64,000 bases of DNA from sequence record KX397371.1. The stretch is one strand, 5' to 3'. This document shows, one piece after another, positions 9,396-63,247 of this stretch. The translations under genes were made by a program, and so were the position numbers. How positions within the stretch are numbered: position 1 is the first letter of the stretch; every line of letters starts with the position of its first letter. A model generated the notes under the pieces. It was not told where the DNA came from. It worked only from the letters and a program-made list of their open reading frames with translations, and searched no databases.

Positions 9396-11708
9396 ATGAA
9401 AGAAACTCGAATCTCCAATCTGGAGCGACTGATTGAGCAAGGCAACACTCTGGTTGCTAACTCAGCGGTTGGCACCACCACTGCGGATCTGTGGAAAACT
9501 GTTGCAGTTGGCGAATCTGTTCGTAGTAACGCACATGCATTCTCTACCGCTGTAAATAGCGCTGGCCAGGCATATGCTGCTGTGTACGGCGGTAAGCCAA
9601 TGTCGCACGCGGCACAGGTTGCTTCTGCCATGATTCTTTCTGCCATGGGCAACGAAGAAGAGTTCATGTCCAAGCCTGCTCGCGAATCTTCCGACAAGCG
9701 CTGGAACAACTACATGGAAGTTGCCATTCCTGGCCAAGCTTCCCTGAACGCTGACTACGGTAAAACGCCGCTGGTTGCGACTGAATACTACACCAACAAA
9801 GATCTGGACAAAAACCTGGGTCTGACTTGGACTCTGAACGTCCGCGCGCTGGAAACCCAGTCTGCGTTCGCTGAGAAACTGTTCCCGACCATCACTGTTG
9901 ACACCAACGACGTTGGTATCACCGTGCGTACCAAAATCACCACCGTAACCCGTGGTATTCTGAACGCGCTGCTGGCGAAAGACAGCGTCATCGACGATCG
10001 TAAACCGCTGCACAACGCACTGACCGACCACACCGTGCTGCAAGACGATGCTATCCGCATCGTGCCGTACGTGATGGAAGACGGCGACAACGCCGAATAC
10101 TTCGTGAGCGATGACATCATCGAAAACGAAACTGTGCGTCTGGGCCGTGTGCCGCCGTACCCGACTAACTATCTGGACATCAGCAAGCTGAAAGGCAACC
10201 TGTTCCGTCTGGCAGCACATCCGGGTATCGTAGCTGAAGGTTACGACGAAACTGACGAAATCGCGCCGGGTGCTGCACTGGGCTCGCTGCTGGTTTCTGT
10301 CCGTAAGCCGGGCGACGATGTGAAGGCTGGTAAGAAAATCATCCTGAACACTCGCGACATGCAGTTTGCAAGCTTCCAGCGTCCTCCTGAAGGTGACGGT
10401 CGTGAGCTGGTCCTCCAGTTCCGTCGTACTCAGTTCGCGCTGAACGGCGACTCTCTGGATTACAAAGGCGACGACATCCCTGCGCTGTCTGCCCTGAAAC
10501 AGAGCAAGTACACCCTGCGCTACGTGATCAACATCACCATGAGCCTGTTCACCAACGGTCAGCGCTCCGGCCAGTACGAAATCAGCGGTGCCAACCTGTC
10601 TATCGAAGACCTGGTTGATGCAACTGGTGCAGAAGTGTCGATGGATTCCGGTATCGGTAAAACCATCATGGACAACCTGAAAATCGAACTGCTGGGCTGG
10701 CGCTTCGACGGTACTCGTACCAACGAGAACCGGAGAACTCAGGGCCTGCTGCTGGACCCGGTCTGGGAACAAGAGAACTACAAGCTGCAATACGGTTCTC
10801 CGATCATGACCAAACAGCCGGTTGGTGTTGAATACGACGACGCTGAACGTCTGGATGACCTGGTGTCTGCGGTTAACATCCGTAACGAAATGCTGGCCAT
10901 CACGCAGACCCTGTCTTACACCGATGCGGTTAAGCAGGCGAAAGCAACTATGGTTACGCAGTGGGATAAAACTGCTATCCGCGGTCTGGGTCGCCACTGG
11001 GTCGCTCCGTGGTACGAAGAAGTTGACTTCAACGTTGACAAAATCGTCCAGTCTCTGGAAACCAAAGATGCGCTGATCAACGCCCGTCAGGCGCTGCTGC
11101 AACGTATCGCTGACCAGGTAACTCGCGCTATCCAGGATAGCCGTTACATGCCTGCTCTGCGTCTGTTGACTGCAAACCCGCAAGCTGTACCGAAAGTTGT
11201 GATTGCAACTGACGAACCTACTGCTGCAATGCTGCTGCTGCAAGTTGGTGAAACTCGCCTGCTGGGCGACCGTTACGACTACGAAGTTGTGACCACCAAC
11301 GATGACCGCTGGCGCATCAAGAACGAGGCTGACGGTTCTTGGACTCGTCGTCTGCAATGGGTTCTGAAAGTTGACGGTGTTGAAGAAGGTTCTTACTGTG
11401 TTCTGAACTGGGGTAACCACTTCTGGTCTCCGATCATGGTAACCAACATCAACATCCAGCGTAACGGTTCTACCAGCAAAGAACTTGCTGTGCAGCCTCG
11501 TAACGCGCACATCTGCCACTGCCCGATCACTGGTCTGATCTGGGTTAAAGGTATCACCAAACTGGTTGAGCAGAAACTGGCTTACAACGTTGTTACCACT
11601 CAGAGTGGCGACGGCGCAACCGCAGGCGGCAACGCAGGCGATGTAGCTGGTGATGCTGGTGCTACCACTCAGAGCGCTGGTACTTCTACCACTGCTCCGA
11701 AAAGCTAA
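9396..11708 (+). CDS. Major capsid protein (phiKZ gp120 / SPN3US gp75-like)
   Basis: 770 aa, strongest codon bias in the window, ATE at residues 128-130 matching an A-X-E prohead-protease site, strong terminator, helicase-X-MCP synteny. Confidence 0.9.
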   Translation: MKETRISNLERLIEQGNTLVANSAVGTTTADLWKTVAVGESVRSNAHAFSTAVNSAGQAYAAVYGGKPMSHAAQVASAMILSAMGNEEEFMSKPARESSDKRWNNYMEVAIPGQASLNADYGKTPLVATEYYTNKDLDKNLGLTWTLNVRALETQSAFAEKLFPTITVDTNDVGITVRTKITTVTRGILNALLAKDSVIDDRKPLHNALTDHTVLQDDAIRIVPYVMEDGDNAEYFVSDDIIENETVRLGRVPPYPTNYLDISKLKGNLFRLAAHPGIVAEGYDETDEIAPGAALGSLLVSVRKPGDDVKAGKKIILNTRDMQFASFQRPPEGDGRELVLQFRRTQFALNGDSLDYKGDDIPALSALKQSKYTLRYVINITMSLFTNGQRSGQYEISGANLSIEDLVDATGAEVSMDSGIGKTIMDNLKIELLGWRFDGTRTNENRRTQGLLLDPVWEQENYKLQYGSPIMTKQPVGVEYDDAERLDDLVSAVNIRNEMLAITQTLSYTDAVKQAKATMVTQWDKTAIRGLGRHWVAPWYEEVDFNVDKIVQSLETKDALINARQALLQRIADQVTRAIQDSRYMPALRLLTANPQAVPKVVIATDEPTAAMLLLQVGETRLLGDRYDYEVVTTNDDRWRIKNEADGSWTRRLQWVLKVDGVEEGSYCVLNWGNHFWSPIMVTNINIQRNGSTSKELAVQPRNAHICHCPITGLIWVKGITKLVEQKLAYNVVTTQSGDGATAGGNAGDVAGDAGATTQSAGTSTTAPKS

Positions 11709-39783: not shown

Positions 39784-40368
39784 ATGTACAATTACGTTGT
39801 GTTGGGCCGCAAAGGTAGCATCGTCAGATTCGTCTTTAAATCTGACCCACCTGCCAAGCCGCGCGCGTTGGATTTAGCGGGCTTCGATTATAAAGGCATC
39901 CGCAAAGGTGTACAGCTGGACTTCAACGGTGACGTGAAGCCGGAGAACCTTTTGTATTCTGGCGATGTGAAGCCAAGAAAGCTTGTCGCCATCGGTGGAA
40001 AGAAACCCGCGAAGGCTGCAAAAGAAAGCAAAAAGGCACCGAAGGCTGAACCGACTTTCATCGTTGTTAAACGTGTGAAGCAGGTCATCGAATATAAGAT
40101 CTGCGGGGACGAGTCTGCGGAACCGTTAAACGAGACTCTGAAGATTAGTCTCGCCGGTTACGACTACAGAAAGCTGCGTAAGGACATGACCTTCCAGTTT
40201 GAAGGCGGTAAGATTGCTGCGGAGAATATTCGCTACTGGCCGTTCCGCGGTACTTCAAATAAGCTGCCGTTGCCGAAGCTTGAAGAAGTTGCACCTAAAG
40301 CGAAATCCGCAGCGGTGTCCAAGCGCGGTGCCACACCAAACGTGTCTATCCTGCGTAAGCACTTCTAA
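39784..40368 (+). CDS. Basic early protein with two internal repeat domains
   Basis: LDLAGFDYKGIRKGVQLDF...ENLLY versus ISLAGYDYRKLRKDMTFQF...ENIRY; Lys/Ala linkers. Confidence 0.8.
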   Translation: MYNYVVLGRKGSIVRFVFKSDPPAKPRALDLAGFDYKGIRKGVQLDFNGDVKPENLLYSGDVKPRKLVAIGGKKPAKAAKESKKAPKAEPTFIVVKRVKQVIEYKICGDESAEPLNETLKISLAGYDYRKLRKDMTFQFEGGKIAAENIRYWPFRGTSNKLPLPKLEEVAPKAKSAAVSKRGATPNVSILRKHF

Positions 40369-40375
40369 TCAGTAC

Positions 40376-40399
40376 GTCCTACTCCTTCGGGAGTAGGAC
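40376..40399 (+). terminator. Intrinsic terminator
   Basis: GTCCTACTCC-TTCG-GGAGTAGGAC plus T tract. Confidence 0.85.
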
Positions 40400-40423: not shown

Positions 40424-40951
40424 ATGACTACTTTTATTGCGGGCAAGAACTACCTCGCCGCAGACCGTGCGGTAATGAAAAACCGAATGGTATTTGAAGA
40501 TGCGAAGATTCGCACTATCAAAGGACGCATCGCGTACTTCTTTGGTTCAGAGCATCCCACACCAGACGAACGCAAGTTGCTGGAAAAGAACATCTACGAT
40601 TACATCTTCGGTAAGCAGAAAGCCCACGAGGCAGCAGAGTTGTGGTTGCTGCACTTCATGGAAAGCAATACGCTGGTTGTGATGACCCGCAAGAAGACGC
40701 TGACCTTCAGTGCTATCTCACGGCTTGCTGCGTGGTCGCCGGAGCTGGGTGCCCCAACACGCCACACAGGACTTACCGTAACCGAAGACCTGCTTGAAAC
40801 ACCCGTCGTTTATGGCTCGGGTGCAGAGTTGGCACGGGCAGGATGGGCATGTGGATTACAGCCTGAGAACATCATTCTCATGGTACAGAAAATAGACCCG
40901 ATGTCAGGGCATGGCTGCGATGTGGTTTACAGAGAGGGCTTGCGAAAATGA
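40424..40951 (+). CDS. HslV/proteasome-beta-like Ntn (Thr) peptidase
   Basis: Met-Thr-Thr start, LAAD, DAKI, VYGSG, IDPMSG: Thr1/Asp17/Lys33/Ser129-type pattern. Confidence 0.7.
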   Translation: MTTFIAGKNYLAADRAVMKNRMVFEDAKIRTIKGRIAYFFGSEHPTPDERKLLEKNIYDYIFGKQKAHEAAELWLLHFMESNTLVVMTRKKTLTFSAISRLAAWSPELGAPTRHTGLTVTEDLLETPVVYGSGAELARAGWACGLQPENIILMVQKIDPMSGHGCDVVYREGLRK

Positions 40952-41496
40952 GTACCGTTTCTATTGCTGGTTTCGTTGTGAATGGTGTGGTCTACGTCAA
41001 CACCGCTGTTCAATCCATGCACCTGATGGCACCGTACAACCCTGAGGCGGGTTTCGATAAACTCGGATGGTGGTTCCCGAACGATGGGCAGGATAAAATT
41101 AGTGACATCTTGGTTAATGGGGATGACTGCGAACGCCATGAGGACATTACCTACTCCGGTAGTGTGCTGCGTCACGATGGGCGATTCTACGACGTTAAAT
41201 TAGCTGGGCCAAACTACCGATTAATTTTCCTCCATCAACTGACCCCCGTGATGGTCTTTCCAGCCGACACGGAATCATCGTTTGTGGCGACCTTTATCGA
41301 GCACTTGTCCTTGCACCCCGACTTGGACACCGAAGGGCCTGGGTGGAGCGCAGAGCGTATCATGAAGATACTGTCGTGCTTCGCAGGCTGTCACAACTTC
41401 AAACCTTTCATGACTCTGGATGAACTCAAAGCCAAAGTCCAAGCTATGCCGGAATGTAAATTAGCGCCATTCCCCCGCCAAAGAAAACCGGAGTAG
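40948..41496 (+). CDS. Hypothetical protein (possible degenerate Ntn-fold partner)
   Basis: ATGA-coupled to the peptidase; N-terminal STVSIAGFVVNGVVYV beta-hairpin pattern only. Confidence 0.6.
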   Translation: MSTVSIAGFVVNGVVYVNTAVQSMHLMAPYNPEAGFDKLGWWFPNDGQDKISDILVNGDDCERHEDITYSGSVLRHDGRFYDVKLAGPNYRLIFLHQLTPVMVFPADTESSFVATFIEHLSLHPDLDTEGPGWSAERIMKILSCFAGCHNFKPFMTLDELKAKVQAMPECKLAPFPRQRKPE

Positions 41497-41557
41497 GAAC
41501 GCGCGGATTTATAACAGCAGCATCCCTTTTAATGACAAACACAAGAGGATTATCAAC

Positions 41558-42169
41558 ATGCAATCTGTAGCCCATGCTTTATCTCCAGTCGCTTTTCCAC
41601 AGTTCACCGGGCTGCAAGTCTACATGTTGCAAGCCACAGCGGGAACCCTCGCCGATGTAGCGCCCGAAGGTTATCGTGACCTCGTTAGCAACATGCTGAA
41701 AGATGGTAACATTCCTGCGGACACACAGGTCTGGCTGACGGTTGATGAGTCGAACGTCAAAGCCGGTAAGAAGCAACGTCGTGGTGGTGCACACATCGAT
41801 GGCAACTACGACCTCTTCGCAAGTGACTGGTGCACCGGTAGTTCTGGCTGGTTAAACGGGGTGCCGGGACGTGAACTGACGCTTGAAGAACACCATCGTA
41901 GTTATCAGGAGTTCGGTGGTGGGATGCTGATTGCCTCCAACCATGCAGCCTGTCAGGTGTGGGAAGGGGAAGTGAACGGTATTCCGGGCCAAGGTGGCGA
42001 CTGTGAGCATCTTCGTGACCAACTGGAAATGCTCCCGACCTATCTGATGGAAAGCAACCGAGCGTACCTGACGAACTCGCAGTGTGTGCACGAGTCGTTA
42101 CCATTAAAAGTTGACTTTCCACGTCAGCTTGTGCGCATCACTCTGTCCGAGCAGTACAAATTTAATTAA
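41558..42169 (+). CDS. 2OG-Fe(II) oxygenase-like protein
   Basis: RRGGAHIDG (HxD), distal CVHES, and RQLVRITL. Confidence 0.6.
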   Translation: MQSVAHALSPVAFPQFTGLQVYMLQATAGTLADVAPEGYRDLVSNMLKDGNIPADTQVWLTVDESNVKAGKKQRRGGAHIDGNYDLFASDWCTGSSGWLNGVPGRELTLEEHHRSYQEFGGGMLIASNHAACQVWEGEVNGIPGQGGDCEHLRDQLEMLPTYLMESNRAYLTNSQCVHESLPLKVDFPRQLVRITLSEQYKFN

Positions 42170-42195
42170 TCTAAAACCACAAAGAGAATCAGAAT

Positions 42196-42858
42196 ATGGC
42201 GAAGCAAAAGAAAACCCGTAACAAAAAATATAACCCACAGCAAGCCCATGCAGAAACAGCCCGTATGGTGGTGCAAAACTCATTAGCCCGCATTTCCTTT
42301 ATCGGTGCATCTAACCGCCGCATTCAACCCTACGGTGGTCGCGGCTTCCAATTCACCGTCAATCGCCCGGTACGGGTAACGGTCAGTGCAGCATTGGCTG
42401 AAACACTGTTCGAAGACCCACGGACATGGTCGGTGTGGATGGCGCATTATGCCGTTAATGCGGAAGGTGTCGTGGATGTGGAGTCTGGTGTTCTTCGCTT
42501 AGACGAATATACGTTGACTGACTTCACGGAAAACGTGGACAAGTTAGTGGAGCACATGAAACCTGAACGCATGATGGATAACCCGGAATACGTGGGCTAT
42601 GCATTCTTTGCTTCACCAAATGAGCGTTACGATTTCACGCATGACACCACGGACGAACGTCTGATTGAAAACTTCATGGCGTCGGGTGTGCTGGAGAAGG
42701 AGAATCATCTTTCACAACACGTTCTGAATGTTACCAAGGAAGAACTTATCATCATGCTCATGGCGGACCATGCCAAGTTTGATACCAACATCAGTATTCA
42801 CCATCGCGGCGAGGGGGATGATTACCACGTCGCAAATAAGCAAGTTATCGGAGAGTAA
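42196..42858 (+). CDS. Hypothetical protein
   Basis: 220 aa, basic N-terminus KKTRNKKYNP. Confidence 0.75.
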   Translation: MAKQKKTRNKKYNPQQAHAETARMVVQNSLARISFIGASNRRIQPYGGRGFQFTVNRPVRVTVSAALAETLFEDPRTWSVWMAHYAVNAEGVVDVESGVLRLDEYTLTDFTENVDKLVEHMKPERMMDNPEYVGYAFFASPNERYDFTHDTTDERLIENFMASGVLEKENHLSQHVLNVTKEELIIMLMADHAKFDTNISIHHRGEGDDYHVANKQVIGE

Positions 42859-42861
42859 GAA

Positions 42862-43428
42862 ATGAAGTTCTGGGAGCGTTTTTGTCGCTTGTTTAAAGAT
42901 GTCCCTGAGGCCCAGTCTGACGGTGACCGTTATACCCAAATCGTGCGTGACTACTTCAATGCAGGTAATCACAACGTCGTGGAACTCTGTGATGCTATTG
43001 GCATGACACCACGCTCACTGTACTTTGCGGTTAACGACGACAACGTACGGGCTAACATTCTGCCCCGCCTCCCTGAAAAGATGCGGATGGAATTGCGTGA
43101 TGAACTGACCGCGCGTGCGTTCAGTCGTCAGGCCGTCTCGTTAATTCGTCCGAGCACCGCGAAGTACGATTTCGAAAACCTCAATGAGTTAATGGCACAC
43201 GTACACCAGTTGTTCGAAACCTACCGCCTCGAACGTGGCGAGAAAGTGGACACCTTTATTAAGGCGTACATCCACTCCCTTACACCACGTACCGTGCGTA
43301 TCGCCTTCGTAGGCGGCGGTCACGAATTCAATGTGGGTATCATTGAAGGTATTAACGTTGTGCAGCAAAACCTGCTTATGGTGAATTATGGAAAACTTAA
43401 CGCCCGTGGAAATCGTCAATGTTTTTAA
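42862..43428 (+). CDS. Hypothetical protein
   Basis: 188 aa; 41-nt overlap with hslU. Confidence 0.75.
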   Translation: MKFWERFCRLFKDVPEAQSDGDRYTQIVRDYFNAGNHNVVELCDAIGMTPRSLYFAVNDDNVRANILPRLPEKMRMELRDELTARAFSRQAVSLIRPSTAKYDFENLNELMAHVHQLFETYRLERGEKVDTFIKAYIHSLTPRTVRIAFVGGGHEFNVGIIEGINVVQQNLLMVNYGKLNARGNRQCF

Positions 43429-45124
43429 CCGTTATGTCCACGGTCAAGAACTGGCAAAAAAGATGTTGGCGATTGCGCTGCGTAACCGCGTACGGGTAGC
43501 ACTGCTACCCCTCGGTGAACGTGACAGTGTTCGCAAACAGAATCTGTTGTTACTGGGGCCAACTGGCTGCGGTAAAACTGCGTTGATGCGTGTATTGAAG
43601 ACGCAGTTTGGTTTACCCGTGTTAGAGCTGGACATGACAGGCTTTTCTGAGACGGGCTACGTGGGGCGTAATCTCAATACCGTGGGGACGGACTTACAAA
43701 CCCTCACGCGTTCAATCGCTTTGCCAGACTGGTACGTAGAAATGCGCACCGGGATGCAACTCGAAAAAGACGAGCAGCGCTATACCCGTGAAGAACTCAA
43801 AGCGTTAGAAGAAAAAGAGTACGAAGTGGAAAGCGCCGCACGACAGGCGGAATGGGATGCAGGACGTGATGCTAAAAAGCAACACGAACAAACGCTGAAA
43901 GATTTAGGCGTGTTCCCGGACGACGATACCTACAATCATTATCGCATGGTCTATTACATGCGTGCGTTTTTAGTGGGCTATCATGCGTTAAAGAACCTGC
44001 CGTATGACGTCATTGATTTCGCGGACATCGAAATGATTCATGGGCAGAAGCTCATTGATGTCGCGAAGACTGTGGTTGGTCTTGTCGAGAAGATGGCTGG
44101 CAGACCGATCAACAGTATCGATGATCTCAATGAAGATCTCAGCGAGCGCACCGATGAGATGATGGAGAACAATCCTGCCTTGTTGGGTGAGTTCATGGGA
44201 CTGATGGCCTACAACGAAGTGTTGGAAACCATTATGGAACTTGGCACCGATCGCCTCAGCAGTAACCCGGTGGCGGCCTGTGTCTCCTCCAGCGATTGGT
44301 ACGACGTCGCGCACTCTTTCGATGAAGCGGATGAACAGGATATCCCGCCAGGCATTGCTTGGCGTCCGATGGACTTCACGGAGTTTGCGCTCTACATCTG
44401 TGTGATGTTGGTGCGTGACCCGGAAGGTCTGGAGGAAGTCTTCGAAGACTGTGATGACTTCACCCGCTTCGCCGACAAGAAACTTTGGAGCTACACCGTC
44501 CCTAAACCGGAAGTGGTGCAGCCTAAAGGGAAGCGTAATGTGTTGTCGAAGAAAGACCTCGACAAGGTGGCGAACTGTAATGGTCGCGACTTCGTGGAGA
44601 ACTTCGGGGTGGTGTTCTTAGATGAGATTGACAAACTCATTGAAACGGATACCACGGGAAGGACACACGTCTCCCGCAGCGGTGTACAGCGCAGTCTGCT
44701 CAAGATGGTAGAAGGCGGCTTGTACGCCGGGATTGACACCACGAACATTCTGTTTGTCGGTGCCGGTTCTTTCGCGGAAGCTCCGGTGACCAAACTGATG
44801 CCGGAACTGCAAGGGCGCTTTACGTTGCGTGCTGAACTGGAACCGCTTGACAAAGAAGCACTGGTTGCAATTTGTCGAATGGACAGCAGTGAGTTCCATG
44901 CGATGGTTCGTCTCTTGCGAATCGAAGGAGTGAAAGTCAATTACGACCTTGACACCTTTGAGTACATTGCAGAGAAAACCGTTGAAGCGAACTCGGTAGA
45001 TAACCTCGGCGCACGGCGCTTAGCCGCGATTGTCGAAGCGTTGTTCCAAGATGCGTTGTACGAACCCAACAAGTACGTGGAGAAAGGTTACGACCTGTCA
45101 GGGAAAACCCTAAGGAAGAAATGA
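43388..45124 (+). CDS. hslU: HslU-like AAA+ unfoldase with expanded I-domain
   Basis: LNRYVHGQELAKK-type N-terminus, GPTGCGKT, GYVG pore loop, VFLDEIDK, GVQRSLL, ELQGRF, NLGARRL. Confidence 0.9.
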   Translation: MENLTPVEIVNVFNRYVHGQELAKKMLAIALRNRVRVALLPLGERDSVRKQNLLLLGPTGCGKTALMRVLKTQFGLPVLELDMTGFSETGYVGRNLNTVGTDLQTLTRSIALPDWYVEMRTGMQLEKDEQRYTREELKALEEKEYEVESAARQAEWDAGRDAKKQHEQTLKDLGVFPDDDTYNHYRMVYYMRAFLVGYHALKNLPYDVIDFADIEMIHGQKLIDVAKTVVGLVEKMAGRPINSIDDLNEDLSERTDEMMENNPALLGEFMGLMAYNEVLETIMELGTDRLSSNPVAACVSSSDWYDVAHSFDEADEQDIPPGIAWRPMDFTEFALYICVMLVRDPEGLEEVFEDCDDFTRFADKKLWSYTVPKPEVVQPKGKRNVLSKKDLDKVANCNGRDFVENFGVVFLDEIDKLIETDTTGRTHVSRSGVQRSLLKMVEGGLYAGIDTTNILFVGAGSFAEAPVTKLMPELQGRFTLRAELEPLDKEALVAICRMDSSEFHAMVRLLRIEGVKVNYDLDTFEYIAEKTVEANSVDNLGARRLAAIVEALFQDALYEPNKYVEKGYDLSGKTLRKK

Positions 45125-45321
45125 TGCTTGCGTCTATCGTAGCAATTATCGTTGGCTTTTTGATGCTCAGTGTGTTGGGTATCTCGATTGCCAAGGTTTC
45201 TATACGGTATCACTGGCCGTGGTGGATCATGCTAGTAGTAGCGCTGGCACTCGGCGGTATTCTCGGCAACGTTTACTTTAACTTCGTTATTGTACCACTT
45301 TATCAAAATATCGGAAATTGA
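45121..45321 (+). CDS. Small two-TM membrane protein
   Basis: 66 aa, two hydrophobic helices, coupled to hslU. Confidence 0.7.
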   Translation: MMLASIVAIIVGFLMLSVLGISIAKVSIRYHWPWWIMLVVALALGGILGNVYFNFVIVPLYQNIGN

Positions 45322-45325
45322 GAAC

Positions 45326-45799
45326 ATGGAAAAGAAAACTGAACGTAACTTGATTGAAATCACAGGCAAGGGCGAAGACAACAACGGCAAGTTCTATTCC
45401 GTCGTGTTGTTAGACCAGTCCAAGATGAACGCTAATGGTCGTCAGTATAACGGCGATCTTGCGCATCTGGTGCGCGGTATCAAACGCATGCCGCGACTGT
45501 TCTGTGAAGTTGACCCGTATCACGATTACCGCTTCCAGTTCCCGGTAACCGATGACCGTTCTGTTTCTGGACCATGTACGGTCGACATGAAAAACGTTTG
45601 TGCATCTATCGAGAACATCCGTCACGATAAGATGAACCAGCGTGTGTCGGCTGAGCTGCGTCCGTGGGGCCCGCAGGCTTCGATGGTGCGTGATCTGTTG
45701 GACGGGGTCAACCAGAACGTGACCTTCGGGATGCGTGCGTTAGCAACCCCTGATGGCAAGATTGATAAAGTCATCACATGGGATTTGTTACCAGAATGA
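45326..45799 (+). CDS. Short paralogue of the phiKZ gp175 / T4 gp21-type prohead protease, catalytic residues apparently lost
   Basis: NANGRQY, LFCEVDP, VDMKNVCASI, LRPWGPQA, NVTFGMRA and VITWD follow the family motif order, without His and Ser at the catalytic positions. Confidence 0.7.
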   Translation: MEKKTERNLIEITGKGEDNNGKFYSVVLLDQSKMNANGRQYNGDLAHLVRGIKRMPRLFCEVDPYHDYRFQFPVTDDRSVSGPCTVDMKNVCASIENIRHDKMNQRVSAELRPWGPQASMVRDLLDGVNQNVTFGMRALATPDGKIDKVITWDLLPE

Positions 45800-46101: not shown

Positions 46102-46161
46102 CAGTAAAAAAAGGGGCACGGAAGTGTCCTTTTTCTTTTTTCGTAAAATAAGGAGTATCAA

Positions 46162-61873: not shown

Positions 61874-63247
61874 ATGCTTTTTTATTCTAAGGAGGCAGCG
61901 CTGCTCGTGTATGACCAAGTCAATCGGGATAATCCTGACTTGGTAGTAGAGTTGACGCCAGCTATCGCCGCCTTAACCAGTGGCCCGACAGTAGTATCGT
62001 CAAACGGCCGCAACACGAAAGCTGTCTTTACCGGATTTCCGGGTTCGGGGTTGCAAGGTAACGTAACCCTTTTTTACGACCGCATTAACCTGTCGACTTT
62101 ATTTAACTTTGTACCGAAAGTCTACATGCCGGATGCCGTGCGCAATTATCGTGACGCGTTACCGGTTATCAATGAAGCTTTAGGGTTGTCGTTGACCGCG
62201 AACGACATTACCACACCCGATGCGCTACTGACACAATCGTCAGCCGCACCCCAGTCAGGCAAAATTACAATCGACGGTAACTGTCCGGCCTTTACCGGTG
62301 CCATCAGCTTTACGTATATGCTGGAAGGGGCAGGCTTTTATCCTGACTCAGGCCCTGGACCGAAAACCTTATTGCAAGGCGACAGCCTGCGTGGTTATTT
62401 CGGTGTGGTGGATGCCGCCGAACTGTTTACCCACAAAGCACTTATTGATACGGTGTTCTTGAAAGGAACGAAGCCGGTGTTGAGTCCCGGTACCGAAGGG
62501 TGGCACAAATTCTTCTATCAAGGACGGGTGCTGTACTTCCCGGTGAGCGCCATCGGCTACACTATTGCCTGGCAAACGTTGTACGGCGAAGGATTGGTCT
62601 ATGGCGTAGACGGCCCTGGCCCCTATCCGTCGGGCACGCCGGTTGACCAAGGTCGCATTATTGCTGCCGACTCCGTCAGCGAAGGTCGCTTCTATTACCG
62701 CTGTCGTTTACCGGCGCTGGGCAAAGACCCGGTGTCGGCGACCAACCTGCTACCGGCAACGGAATACGCGGGCAGTGAACTAGAGATGTTCAATTATCTC
62801 TATAACGGAAAGTGGGCAGCATTGCGGGGCGCTGCATGGACGGTGTACATCATGACGCAGGCCAGTGTCGTGGGGACGTTAACCAACCACAAGGTTATCA
62901 CCGGTTCTCTTGCCGCTTCAACCAACATACCGAAAACCACGGCGAGCACCAGCTACACCTGGTTCCCGGTGCTGGAGTTGGTTGACAAAAACGGCACGAC
63001 CTTAGGACTGGAAGAGATCAAGGGTAATGTTGACCATACGCTTTCTCCGATTCTTTTCGATACCACTAACACGATGGAACTCCATCCGGTGGTGTTAGGT
63101 AATCCACGTACCGTTGAATTTGCCCCGGTGCTGTTCTCTGCGGATAACAGTATGGCGTTGCATCCGGTGACGTTAGGCTTACCGAAGACCGTGGACTTCA
63201 CCCCCATCACCTTTACGGCTGAGCTATATACCCCGCCGGAAAGTTAA
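61874..63247 (+). CDS. Chimeric tail-associated protein: paralogue-type N-domain, second-family C-domain and 26-aa repeats
   Basis: VNRDN/RNT/FYDRINL N-half; GYFGVV, WHKF..GRVLY, WQTLY..GLVYG C-half. ATG 61874 chosen because it matches the paralogue N-termini. Confidence 0.7.
   Translation: MLFYSKEAALLVYDQVNRDNPDLVVELTPAIAALTSGPTVVSSNGRNTKAVFTGFPGSGLQGNVTLFYDRINLSTLFNFVPKVYMPDAVRNYRDALPVINEALGLSLTANDITTPDALLTQSSAAPQSGKITIDGNCPAFTGAISFTYMLEGAGFYPDSGPGPKTLLQGDSLRGYFGVVDAAELFTHKALIDTVFLKGTKPVLSPGTEGWHKFFYQGRVLYFPVSAIGYTIAWQTLYGEGLVYGVDGPGPYPSGTPVDQGRIIAADSVSEGRFYYRCRLPALGKDPVSATNLLPATEYAGSELEMFNYLYNGKWAALRGAAWTVYIMTQASVVGTLTNHKVITGSLAASTNIPKTTASTSYTWFPVLELVDKNGTTLGLEEIKGNVDHTLSPILFDTTNTMELHPVVLGNPRTVEFAPVLFSADNSMALHPVTLGLPKTVDFTPITFTAELYTPPES

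Follow-up and report, generated by a model that had tools for sequence, protein, structure and literature searches.

The analysed stretch of DNA (hereafter the window) comprises 64,000 nucleotides (nt) of the jumbo phage record KX397371.1, whose positions 62001–126000 correspond to positions 1–64,000 of the window. Its segment 40424–45124 begins with the gene of a putative proteasome-like peptidase, gp126, and ends with that of an ATPase of the HslU clade, gp131. The reading that we favour, at a rough probability of 55%, is that these are not two halves of one protease: gp131 would be an autonomous unfoldase without the tail by which HslU activates HslV, and gp126 would form a separate peptidase module with its neighbour gp127. 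The segment is identical (100%) to positions 102424–107124 of Erwinia jumbo phage vB_EamM_Parshik, which bears out an earlier reading of the window from its sequence alone (hereafter the sequence-only reading) in that the HslUV-like parts are phage-encoded. Parshik belongs to the genus Machinavirus within the Chimalliviridae, the nucleus-forming jumbo phages (NCBI taxonomy), and the same 4.7-kb stretch is 83–99% identical in the phages Huxley, pSal-SNUABM-04, pEa_SNUABM_43/42/10, and Machina. As that reading had also said, four genes separate the two open reading frames (ORFs), and these are exactly gp127, gp128, gp129, and gp130. The genes and domains that carry the argument are as follows (window positions; aa, amino acids; Ntn, N-terminal nucleophile; PPH, phage proteasome homolog):

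40424–40951, plus strand: gp126, 175 aa, putative divergent Thr1 Ntn peptidase, PPH-like (based on phrog_1040, hhalign, and catalytic positions)
40948–41496, plus strand: gp127, 182 aa, partner gene of gp126, its start overlapping the gp126 stop by 4 nt
41558–43428, plus strand: gp128, gp129, and gp130, intervening genes without assigned function
43388–45124, plus strand: gp131, 578 aa, HslU-clade AAA+ ATPase and predicted unfoldase, AAA+ part at residues 1–106 and 399–578
43706–44581, plus strand: enlarged I-domain of gp131, residues 107–398, 292 aa

The motor core of gp131 was assigned by sequence and structure searches. Against the PDB, HslU was the top match (E-value 1e-48) in two stretches covering residues 4–106 and 393–560, followed by ClpX with an E-value of about 1e-24. 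The HslU equivalog model TIGR00390 was matched at an E-value of 1.8e-59 and 201.9 bits, which is under its cut-off of 362.45. An AlphaFold (AF2) model built from a 71-sequence alignment had a mean pLDDT (predicted local distance difference test) of 86.2 and was superposed with VIA-align onto 1ofh_A, the I-domain-deleted HslU of H. influenzae, with a Z-score of 29.2 and a root-mean-square deviation of 1.9 Å over 285 residues, as compared to a Z-score of 24.2 for ClpX; the top Foldseek matches were all HslU/ClpY. HslU of E. coli and H. influenzae (1g4a, 1ofh, 1g3i) was the best match of the core in both sequence and structure, with 34% identity over the 285 residues, and identity to enterobacterial HslU was about 33%. 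ClpX, the second-best AAA+ match, scored clearly lower, and gp131 lacks the N-terminal zinc-binding domain of ClpX and carries its insertion at the HslU I-domain site. The Walker A motif (residues 57–64), the GYVG pore loop (90–93), DEID (412–415), ELQGRF (473–478, with the arginine finger R477), and GARR (541–544, sensor-2, R543/R544) were all located, so that an HslU starting at 43388 with Walker A/B, GYVG, and the arginine finger retained was correctly read from the sequence. Walker A, Walker B, the pore-1 motif G-Y-x-G, ELQGRF, and GARR were invariant in 71 of 71 aligned sequences. In the phylogeny, the 33 ATPases of the SPN3US group formed a single clade on a long stem, apart from 42 cellular HslU sequences (Shimodaira–Hasegawa-like approximate likelihood ratio support of 100). 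gp131 is an HslU-clade AAA+ ATPase.

Two features set gp131 apart from cellular HslU, the first of which is the size of its insertion. The distance between GYVG and DEID is 318 aa, as against a median of 163 (range 152–194) in the 42 cellular sequences, in agreement with the about 320 versus about 165 aa previously estimated. The insertion (residues 107–398) lies at the site of the HslU I-domain and comprises 292 rather than about 135 aa, i.e., it is enlarged. In the AF2 model it consists of about a dozen predicted helices with pLDDT values mostly between 85 and 95, and its composition is acidic (60 D/E versus 33 K/R). The I-domain diverges much faster than the motor parts: identities of gp131 for the N-terminal part, the I-domain, and the C-terminal part were 75, 43, and 75% with phage Caitlin, 58, 24, and 66% with Kwan, and 52, 15, and 55% with the CR5 type, whose insertion is still longer (about 420 aa). 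To the I-domains of cellular HslU the identity was 10–17%, i.e., sequence similarity is undetectable, and searches against Pfam and the ESM Atlas gave no usable match for this domain.

The second feature is the C-terminus, where gp131 ends in ...GYDLSGKTLRKK. A tail of the type ...[DE]DLS[RK][FY]IL with a terminal leucine was present in 41 of the 42 cellular HslU sequences (the exception being P0061) and in none of 29 phage homologs, which instead end in G-[YF]-[DN]-[ILV]-x-G-x-x-[LV]-R followed by 0–12 unconserved residues. In the MAFFT alignment, this phage end motif coincides with the cellular strand V-x-I-D-x-x-Y-V-x-x-K, upstream of the last helix and the tail, and the last residue of the gp131 model superposes on residue 429 of 1ofh_A, the end of the aligned range. 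The chain of gp131 terminates some 15 residues ahead of the place where HslU has its HslV-activating tail, which is missing rather than remodelled. The sequence-only reading had proposed that the protein ends without the DLSRFIL tail and that activation was altered accordingly; the loss of the canonical tail is confirmed, whereas an altered tail is not, since the phage "DLS" is matched in the alignment to the strand that precedes the HslU tail by about 15 residues. This "DLS" in Parshik is a coincidence, as relatives have DIT, DIR, or NIS at the same place. In HslUV structures, the HslU tail reaches in between HslV subunits, and HslV is not activated without it. That gp131 has no such tail speaks against a canonical coupling of gp131 to HslV, be it of phage or host origin. 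Apart from the shared Walker A/B motifs, GYVG pore loop, arginine finger, sensor-2, and insertion at the I-domain site, gp131 differs from HslU in lacking the last approximately 15 residues including the DLSRFIL tail, in its I-domain, in its score below the TIGR00390 cut-off, and in having no adjacent hslV gene.

The product of gp126 has the N-terminal Met-Thr-Thr (MTT, residues 1–3), the Asp/Lys catalytic positions (AAD at 12–14 and K28), and the GSG motif (131–133) in common with HslV (ClpQ). It further reads DPMSG at 158–162, and its ATG is preceded by an AAGGA ribosome-binding site. T2, D14, K28, G41, and GSG were invariant and MTT was N-terminal in all five representatives of the gp126 cluster; T2 was kept in L024, L026, L027, and CR5. 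In PHROGs, gp126 falls into a family of its own (phrog_23394) with a weaker match to phrog_1040 ("peptidase HslV family", E-value 2.7e-10, residues 1–172). When the profile of gp126 relatives was compared by hhalign with an alignment of 98 small phage Ntn proteins, the probability was 97.7% (E-value 2e-12), and MTT, D14, K28, and GSG of gp126 were placed on the conserved positions of that family. The profile of the small phage Ntn family in turn matched HslV (2.4e-11), the proteasome beta subunit (3e-10), and also BPH in the PDB; the family has 976 members at an E-value of 0.001 or below, with lengths of 133–170 aa, some of which carry PF00227. These indirect links are what places gp126 in the superfamily, and on that basis the Ntn peptidase that the sequence-only reading had seen at 40424 holds up. 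Direct searches gave no link to HslV: gp126 had no match at all in Pfam (PF00227 included) or NCBIfam (TIGR03692 included), gp126, its profile, and gp1 (see below) found no HslV in the PDB, and an IMG/VR scan for gp126 relatives found none. The AF2 model of gp126, from a five-sequence alignment, was poor (pLDDT 57.6, disordered termini); its confident centre had HslV of T. maritima as the top VIA-align match with a weak Z-score of 4.0 over 71 residues, and Foldseek with this model returned nothing significant. By sequence, gp126 belongs to the proteasome-beta/HslV superfamily as a highly divergent, predicted Thr1 Ntn peptidase; its catalytic residues are intact, and it is apparently nearer to a phage PPH-like family than to HslV proper.

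PPH has been described as a group-I proteasome homolog of about 140 residues in tailed phages (PMC8665760), and our comparison with it relies on this published description of small phage-borne Thr1 proteasome-like proteins near HslV/BPH. The 976-member family (133–170 aa) fits the description and is probably PPH. So does gp1 of Parshik (157 aa; record positions 1–474, outside the window), a second Ntn paralog that emerged when the whole Parshik record was searched with phrog_1040; it is only 17% identical to gp126 and a far better match to phrog_1040 (E-value 1.7e-38). gp126 differs from PPH in being longer (175 aa), in its identity of 15–20% to the 976-member family, and in having gp127 as a partner; it seemingly also keeps a helix pair at residues 47–79 (in the low-confidence model), whereas PPH is said to lack H2. 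Genes like gp1 are widespread and occur in SPN3US-type phages, phiEaH2, Asesino, Stratton, and 49-kb Klebsiella phages independently of an HslU-like gene, phiEaH2 having no HslU-like gene. A candidate partner of gp1, its neighbour gp2, was rejected, as it is not found beside the gp1-like genes of Caitlin, SPAsTU, EC001, and phiEaH2.

The constant companion of gp126 is gp127. A gp127-like gene was found immediately downstream of the gp126-type gene, overlapping or a few bases apart, in each of the eight loci that yielded one or other of the two genes (pEa_SNUABM_6, L016, L024/25, L026, L027/28, CR5, Phobos, and L030), making gp127 the obligate genomic partner of gp126-type peptidases. A search of 1.84 billion representative proteins with the gp127 profile returned five short relatives only. 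The idea that gp127 could itself be Ntn-like, a "dead Ntn paralog", received no support from sequence, the hhalign probability being about 1%. Five long proteins (P0245 and P0247–P0250; 1285–2831 aa) match profile positions of about 41–75 of gp127, the GWWFPNDG region, in 3–12 repeated stretches each, which may reflect a common repeat motif or an artefact of composition. In the metagenomic relative L016 (at 11039–11488), a Macro-domain protein directly follows the gp126/gp127 pair and replaces the Parshik genes.

The ATPase and the pair follow separate phyletic patterns. The ATPase is present without gp126/gp127 in at least five lineages (Caitlin/ChrisDB, the SPAsTU group, Kwan/Wellington, L029, and L031), with no phage Ntn gene at all in Kwan, and evidently functions without the pair. 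Conversely, the pair of L016 has different neighbours, none of the genes within 10 kb being of the AAA+ type. In the SPN3US type, the ATPase is reduced to a 75-aa N-terminal stub, so that the ATPase can be called dispensable. In the SPN3US-type Escherichia phage EC001, for instance, a 75-aa ORF (L007:6001–6228) matches residues 1–68 of gp131 only, with about 70% identity, and is a remnant of the HslU-like gene, which has been deleted in the SPN3US lineage. Co-occurrence in relatives, which the sequence-only reading had named as a check, hence fails in both directions, and its view of gp126 and gp131 as two halves of one "split HslUV" is weakened by the missing docking tail, the obligate gp126–gp127 linkage, and the independent phyletic patterns: the constant partner of gp126 is gp127, not the ATPase.

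From these results we infer the activities, oligomeric states, autonomy, and location of the two modules as follows. Two separately inherited proteolysis-related modules would lie together in what is probably a single late transcription unit of this nucleus-forming phage. gp131 would be an HslU-derived AAA+ translocase of the hexameric type, for which ATP binding and hydrolysis are suggested by Walker A/B, the arginine finger, and sensor-2, and would thread polypeptides through its GYVG pore, with the enlarged, acidic, fast-diverging I-domain most likely selecting substrates or adaptors. Ending about 15 residues short, it could not use the canonical tail-in-pocket mechanism to open or activate a ring of the HslV type, and for the same reason it most likely acts alone as an unfoldase or remodeller. 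On the side of the peptidase, host methionine aminopeptidase would expose Thr1 of gp126, which would work with its translationally coupled partner gp127; any cooperation of gp131 with gp126/gp127 would be facultative and via a non-canonical interface. Host defence proteins or phage structures as targets, as proposed from the sequence alone, are pure speculation.

The action of gp131 may take place inside the phage nucleus, by analogy with gp116 of Erwinia phage RAY, an HslU-like ATPase that was localised to the phage nucleus by fusion to green fluorescent protein (GFP; Prichard et al. 2023, PMC10299810). This GFP localisation was the sole experimental datum found in the literature. RAY gp116 resembles gp131 in its size (569 aa), in coming from the Chimalliviridae, in its enlarged insertion, and in having no canonical tail, whereas the AAA+ parts of the two are only 30–35% identical; RAY has no phage Ntn gene. 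The analogy is suggestive only.

Several points weigh against an autonomous gp131 beside a separate peptidase module. The classical partner of a GYVG-pore translocase is a peptidase. In the Parshik clade, L024, CR5/Phobos, and L030, which have both modules, the pair always precedes the ATPase by 1–5 genes and shares its strand; this constant order would be expected from a long-standing functional association and equally from mere shared synteny. As the same position is found in basal (CR5, L030) and derived branches, the pair was probably an ancestral neighbour, with repeated losses. The fold of gp126 had to be taken from homology, given the poor AF2 model and the Z-score of only 4.0 with HslV. 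Lastly, RAY gp116 has a very long branch and an uncertain position in the tree, does not clearly join the Parshik clade, and its nuclear localisation may not transfer to gp131.

The best-surviving alternative is a joint, ATP-dependent phage protease of two or three components, in which gp131 hexamers would dock on a ring of gp126 (or gp126/gp127) via a new interface in place of the lost tail and would supply it with unfolded substrates chosen by the I-domain. The position of the pair upstream of the ATPase in four lineages fits this arrangement, as do the shared strand and probable transcription unit of gp126 and gp131, the intact catalytic and pore motifs, and the descent of both families from partners that cooperate in cells. 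It has to contend with a gp131 that has neither the docking tail nor any conserved C-terminal residues, with the retention of the ATPase in lineages that are without the pair, with the L016 pair that has no AAA+ gene nearby, and with the PPH family, for which no unfoldase partner is known (PMC8665760). We regard this alternative as possible, with odds of about one in four. A further reading appears unlikely, in which an unfoldase derived from HslU, without its tail and with an I-domain specific to the lineage, acts in or at the phage nucleus and is joined in some lineages through a new interface to a gp126/gp127 proteasome-like particle. If true, it would be a virus-built compartmental machine for protein degradation or remodelling that evolved independently of HslUV docking.

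Two further alternatives concern the partners of gp131. As a chaperone of virion or prohead assembly or maturation, gp131 would act together with the Peptidase_S80-like gp133 (listed below), and gp126/gp127 would be an unrelated accessory peptidase. The order gp131, gp132, gp133 is conserved in Caitlin, SPAsTU, and L029, and the gp133 homolog of SPAsTU carries the annotation "virion structural protein"; the SPN3US type, however, makes virions despite the loss of its ATPase, and we consider such a role improbable. Capture of host HslV by gp131, displacing host HslU and redirecting host proteolysis to phage-chosen targets, is suggested by an AAA+ core closest to HslU and by lineages such as Kwan and RAY, which have the ATPase but no phage Ntn gene, yet it is very improbable with the activating tail missing, a core only about 33% identical to enterobacterial HslU, and host HslV in another compartment if gp131 is nuclear like RAY gp116.

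Virus-encoded AAA+ unfoldases and proteasome-like peptidases are almost unstudied. An HslU clade without its HslV-coupling element and with a doubled substrate-binding domain represents a natural experiment in the change of partners of an AAA+ protein, and the strictly paired gp126/gp127 lend themselves to study as a possible new proteasome-like particle of viruses. As annotations, the two gene types are not new. Parshik gp126 is labelled "hypothetical" and gp131 "putative heat shock protein" in its record, and in the GenBank record of pEa_SNUABM_43 their counterparts are already termed "HslV-like" and "HslU-like", respectively. The paper on pSal-SNUABM-04 remarked on the HslV-like ORFs 1 and 116 and overlooked the ATPase (PMC7823757), whose counterpart in this phage carries a "DnaA" annotation. 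The practical value is modest, since the genes are accessory (lost in SPN3US, absent from many relatives) and already annotated in GenBank. A 586-aa HslU-like protein (P0023; 135 member sequences) that is 51% identical to gp131 is named at NCBI as a Salmonella enterica "AAA family ATPase"; judging from this record, jumbo-phage DNA seems to be present in many bacterial assemblies.

The surroundings of the segment contain three further features:

40376–40399, plus strand: strong hairpin resembling a terminator, with a 10-bp stem, a TTCG loop, and a T-run, between gp125 and gp126
45121–45321, plus strand: gp132, 66 aa, two predicted membrane helices, its start overlapping the gp131 stop by 4 nt
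45326–45799, plus strand: gp133, short relative of the Peptidase_S80 prohead protease (PF20034, E-value 3.3e-7; phrog_7478, E-value 4.3e-55)

The hairpin probably marks the start of a new transcription unit. The next strong terminator-like site on the plus strand is at 46109–46134, and with one hairpin just upstream of gp126 and no other strong one until 46109, it is plausible that gp126 to gp134 form a single unit. Among sequencing runs recorded as RNA, none contained the segment. A scan for sigma-70 promoters did not give more sites than shuffled sequences, which is not relevant here because the phage has its own RNA polymerases. Of the intervening genes, gp129 is conserved throughout the SPN3US-like group, including phages without the ATPase. 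gp132 is very hydrophobic and has a homolog in pEa_SNUABM_43. The Peptidase_S80 profile (phiKZ-type prohead protease) is matched by gp133 in its C-terminal portion only, and pEa_SNUABM_43 has an additional 243-aa ORF ("prohead core protein protease") before its gp133 homolog that Parshik is without. In gp125 (39784–40368, 194 aa), two stretches match the 104-position profile phrog_12339, which suggests an internal tandem duplication.

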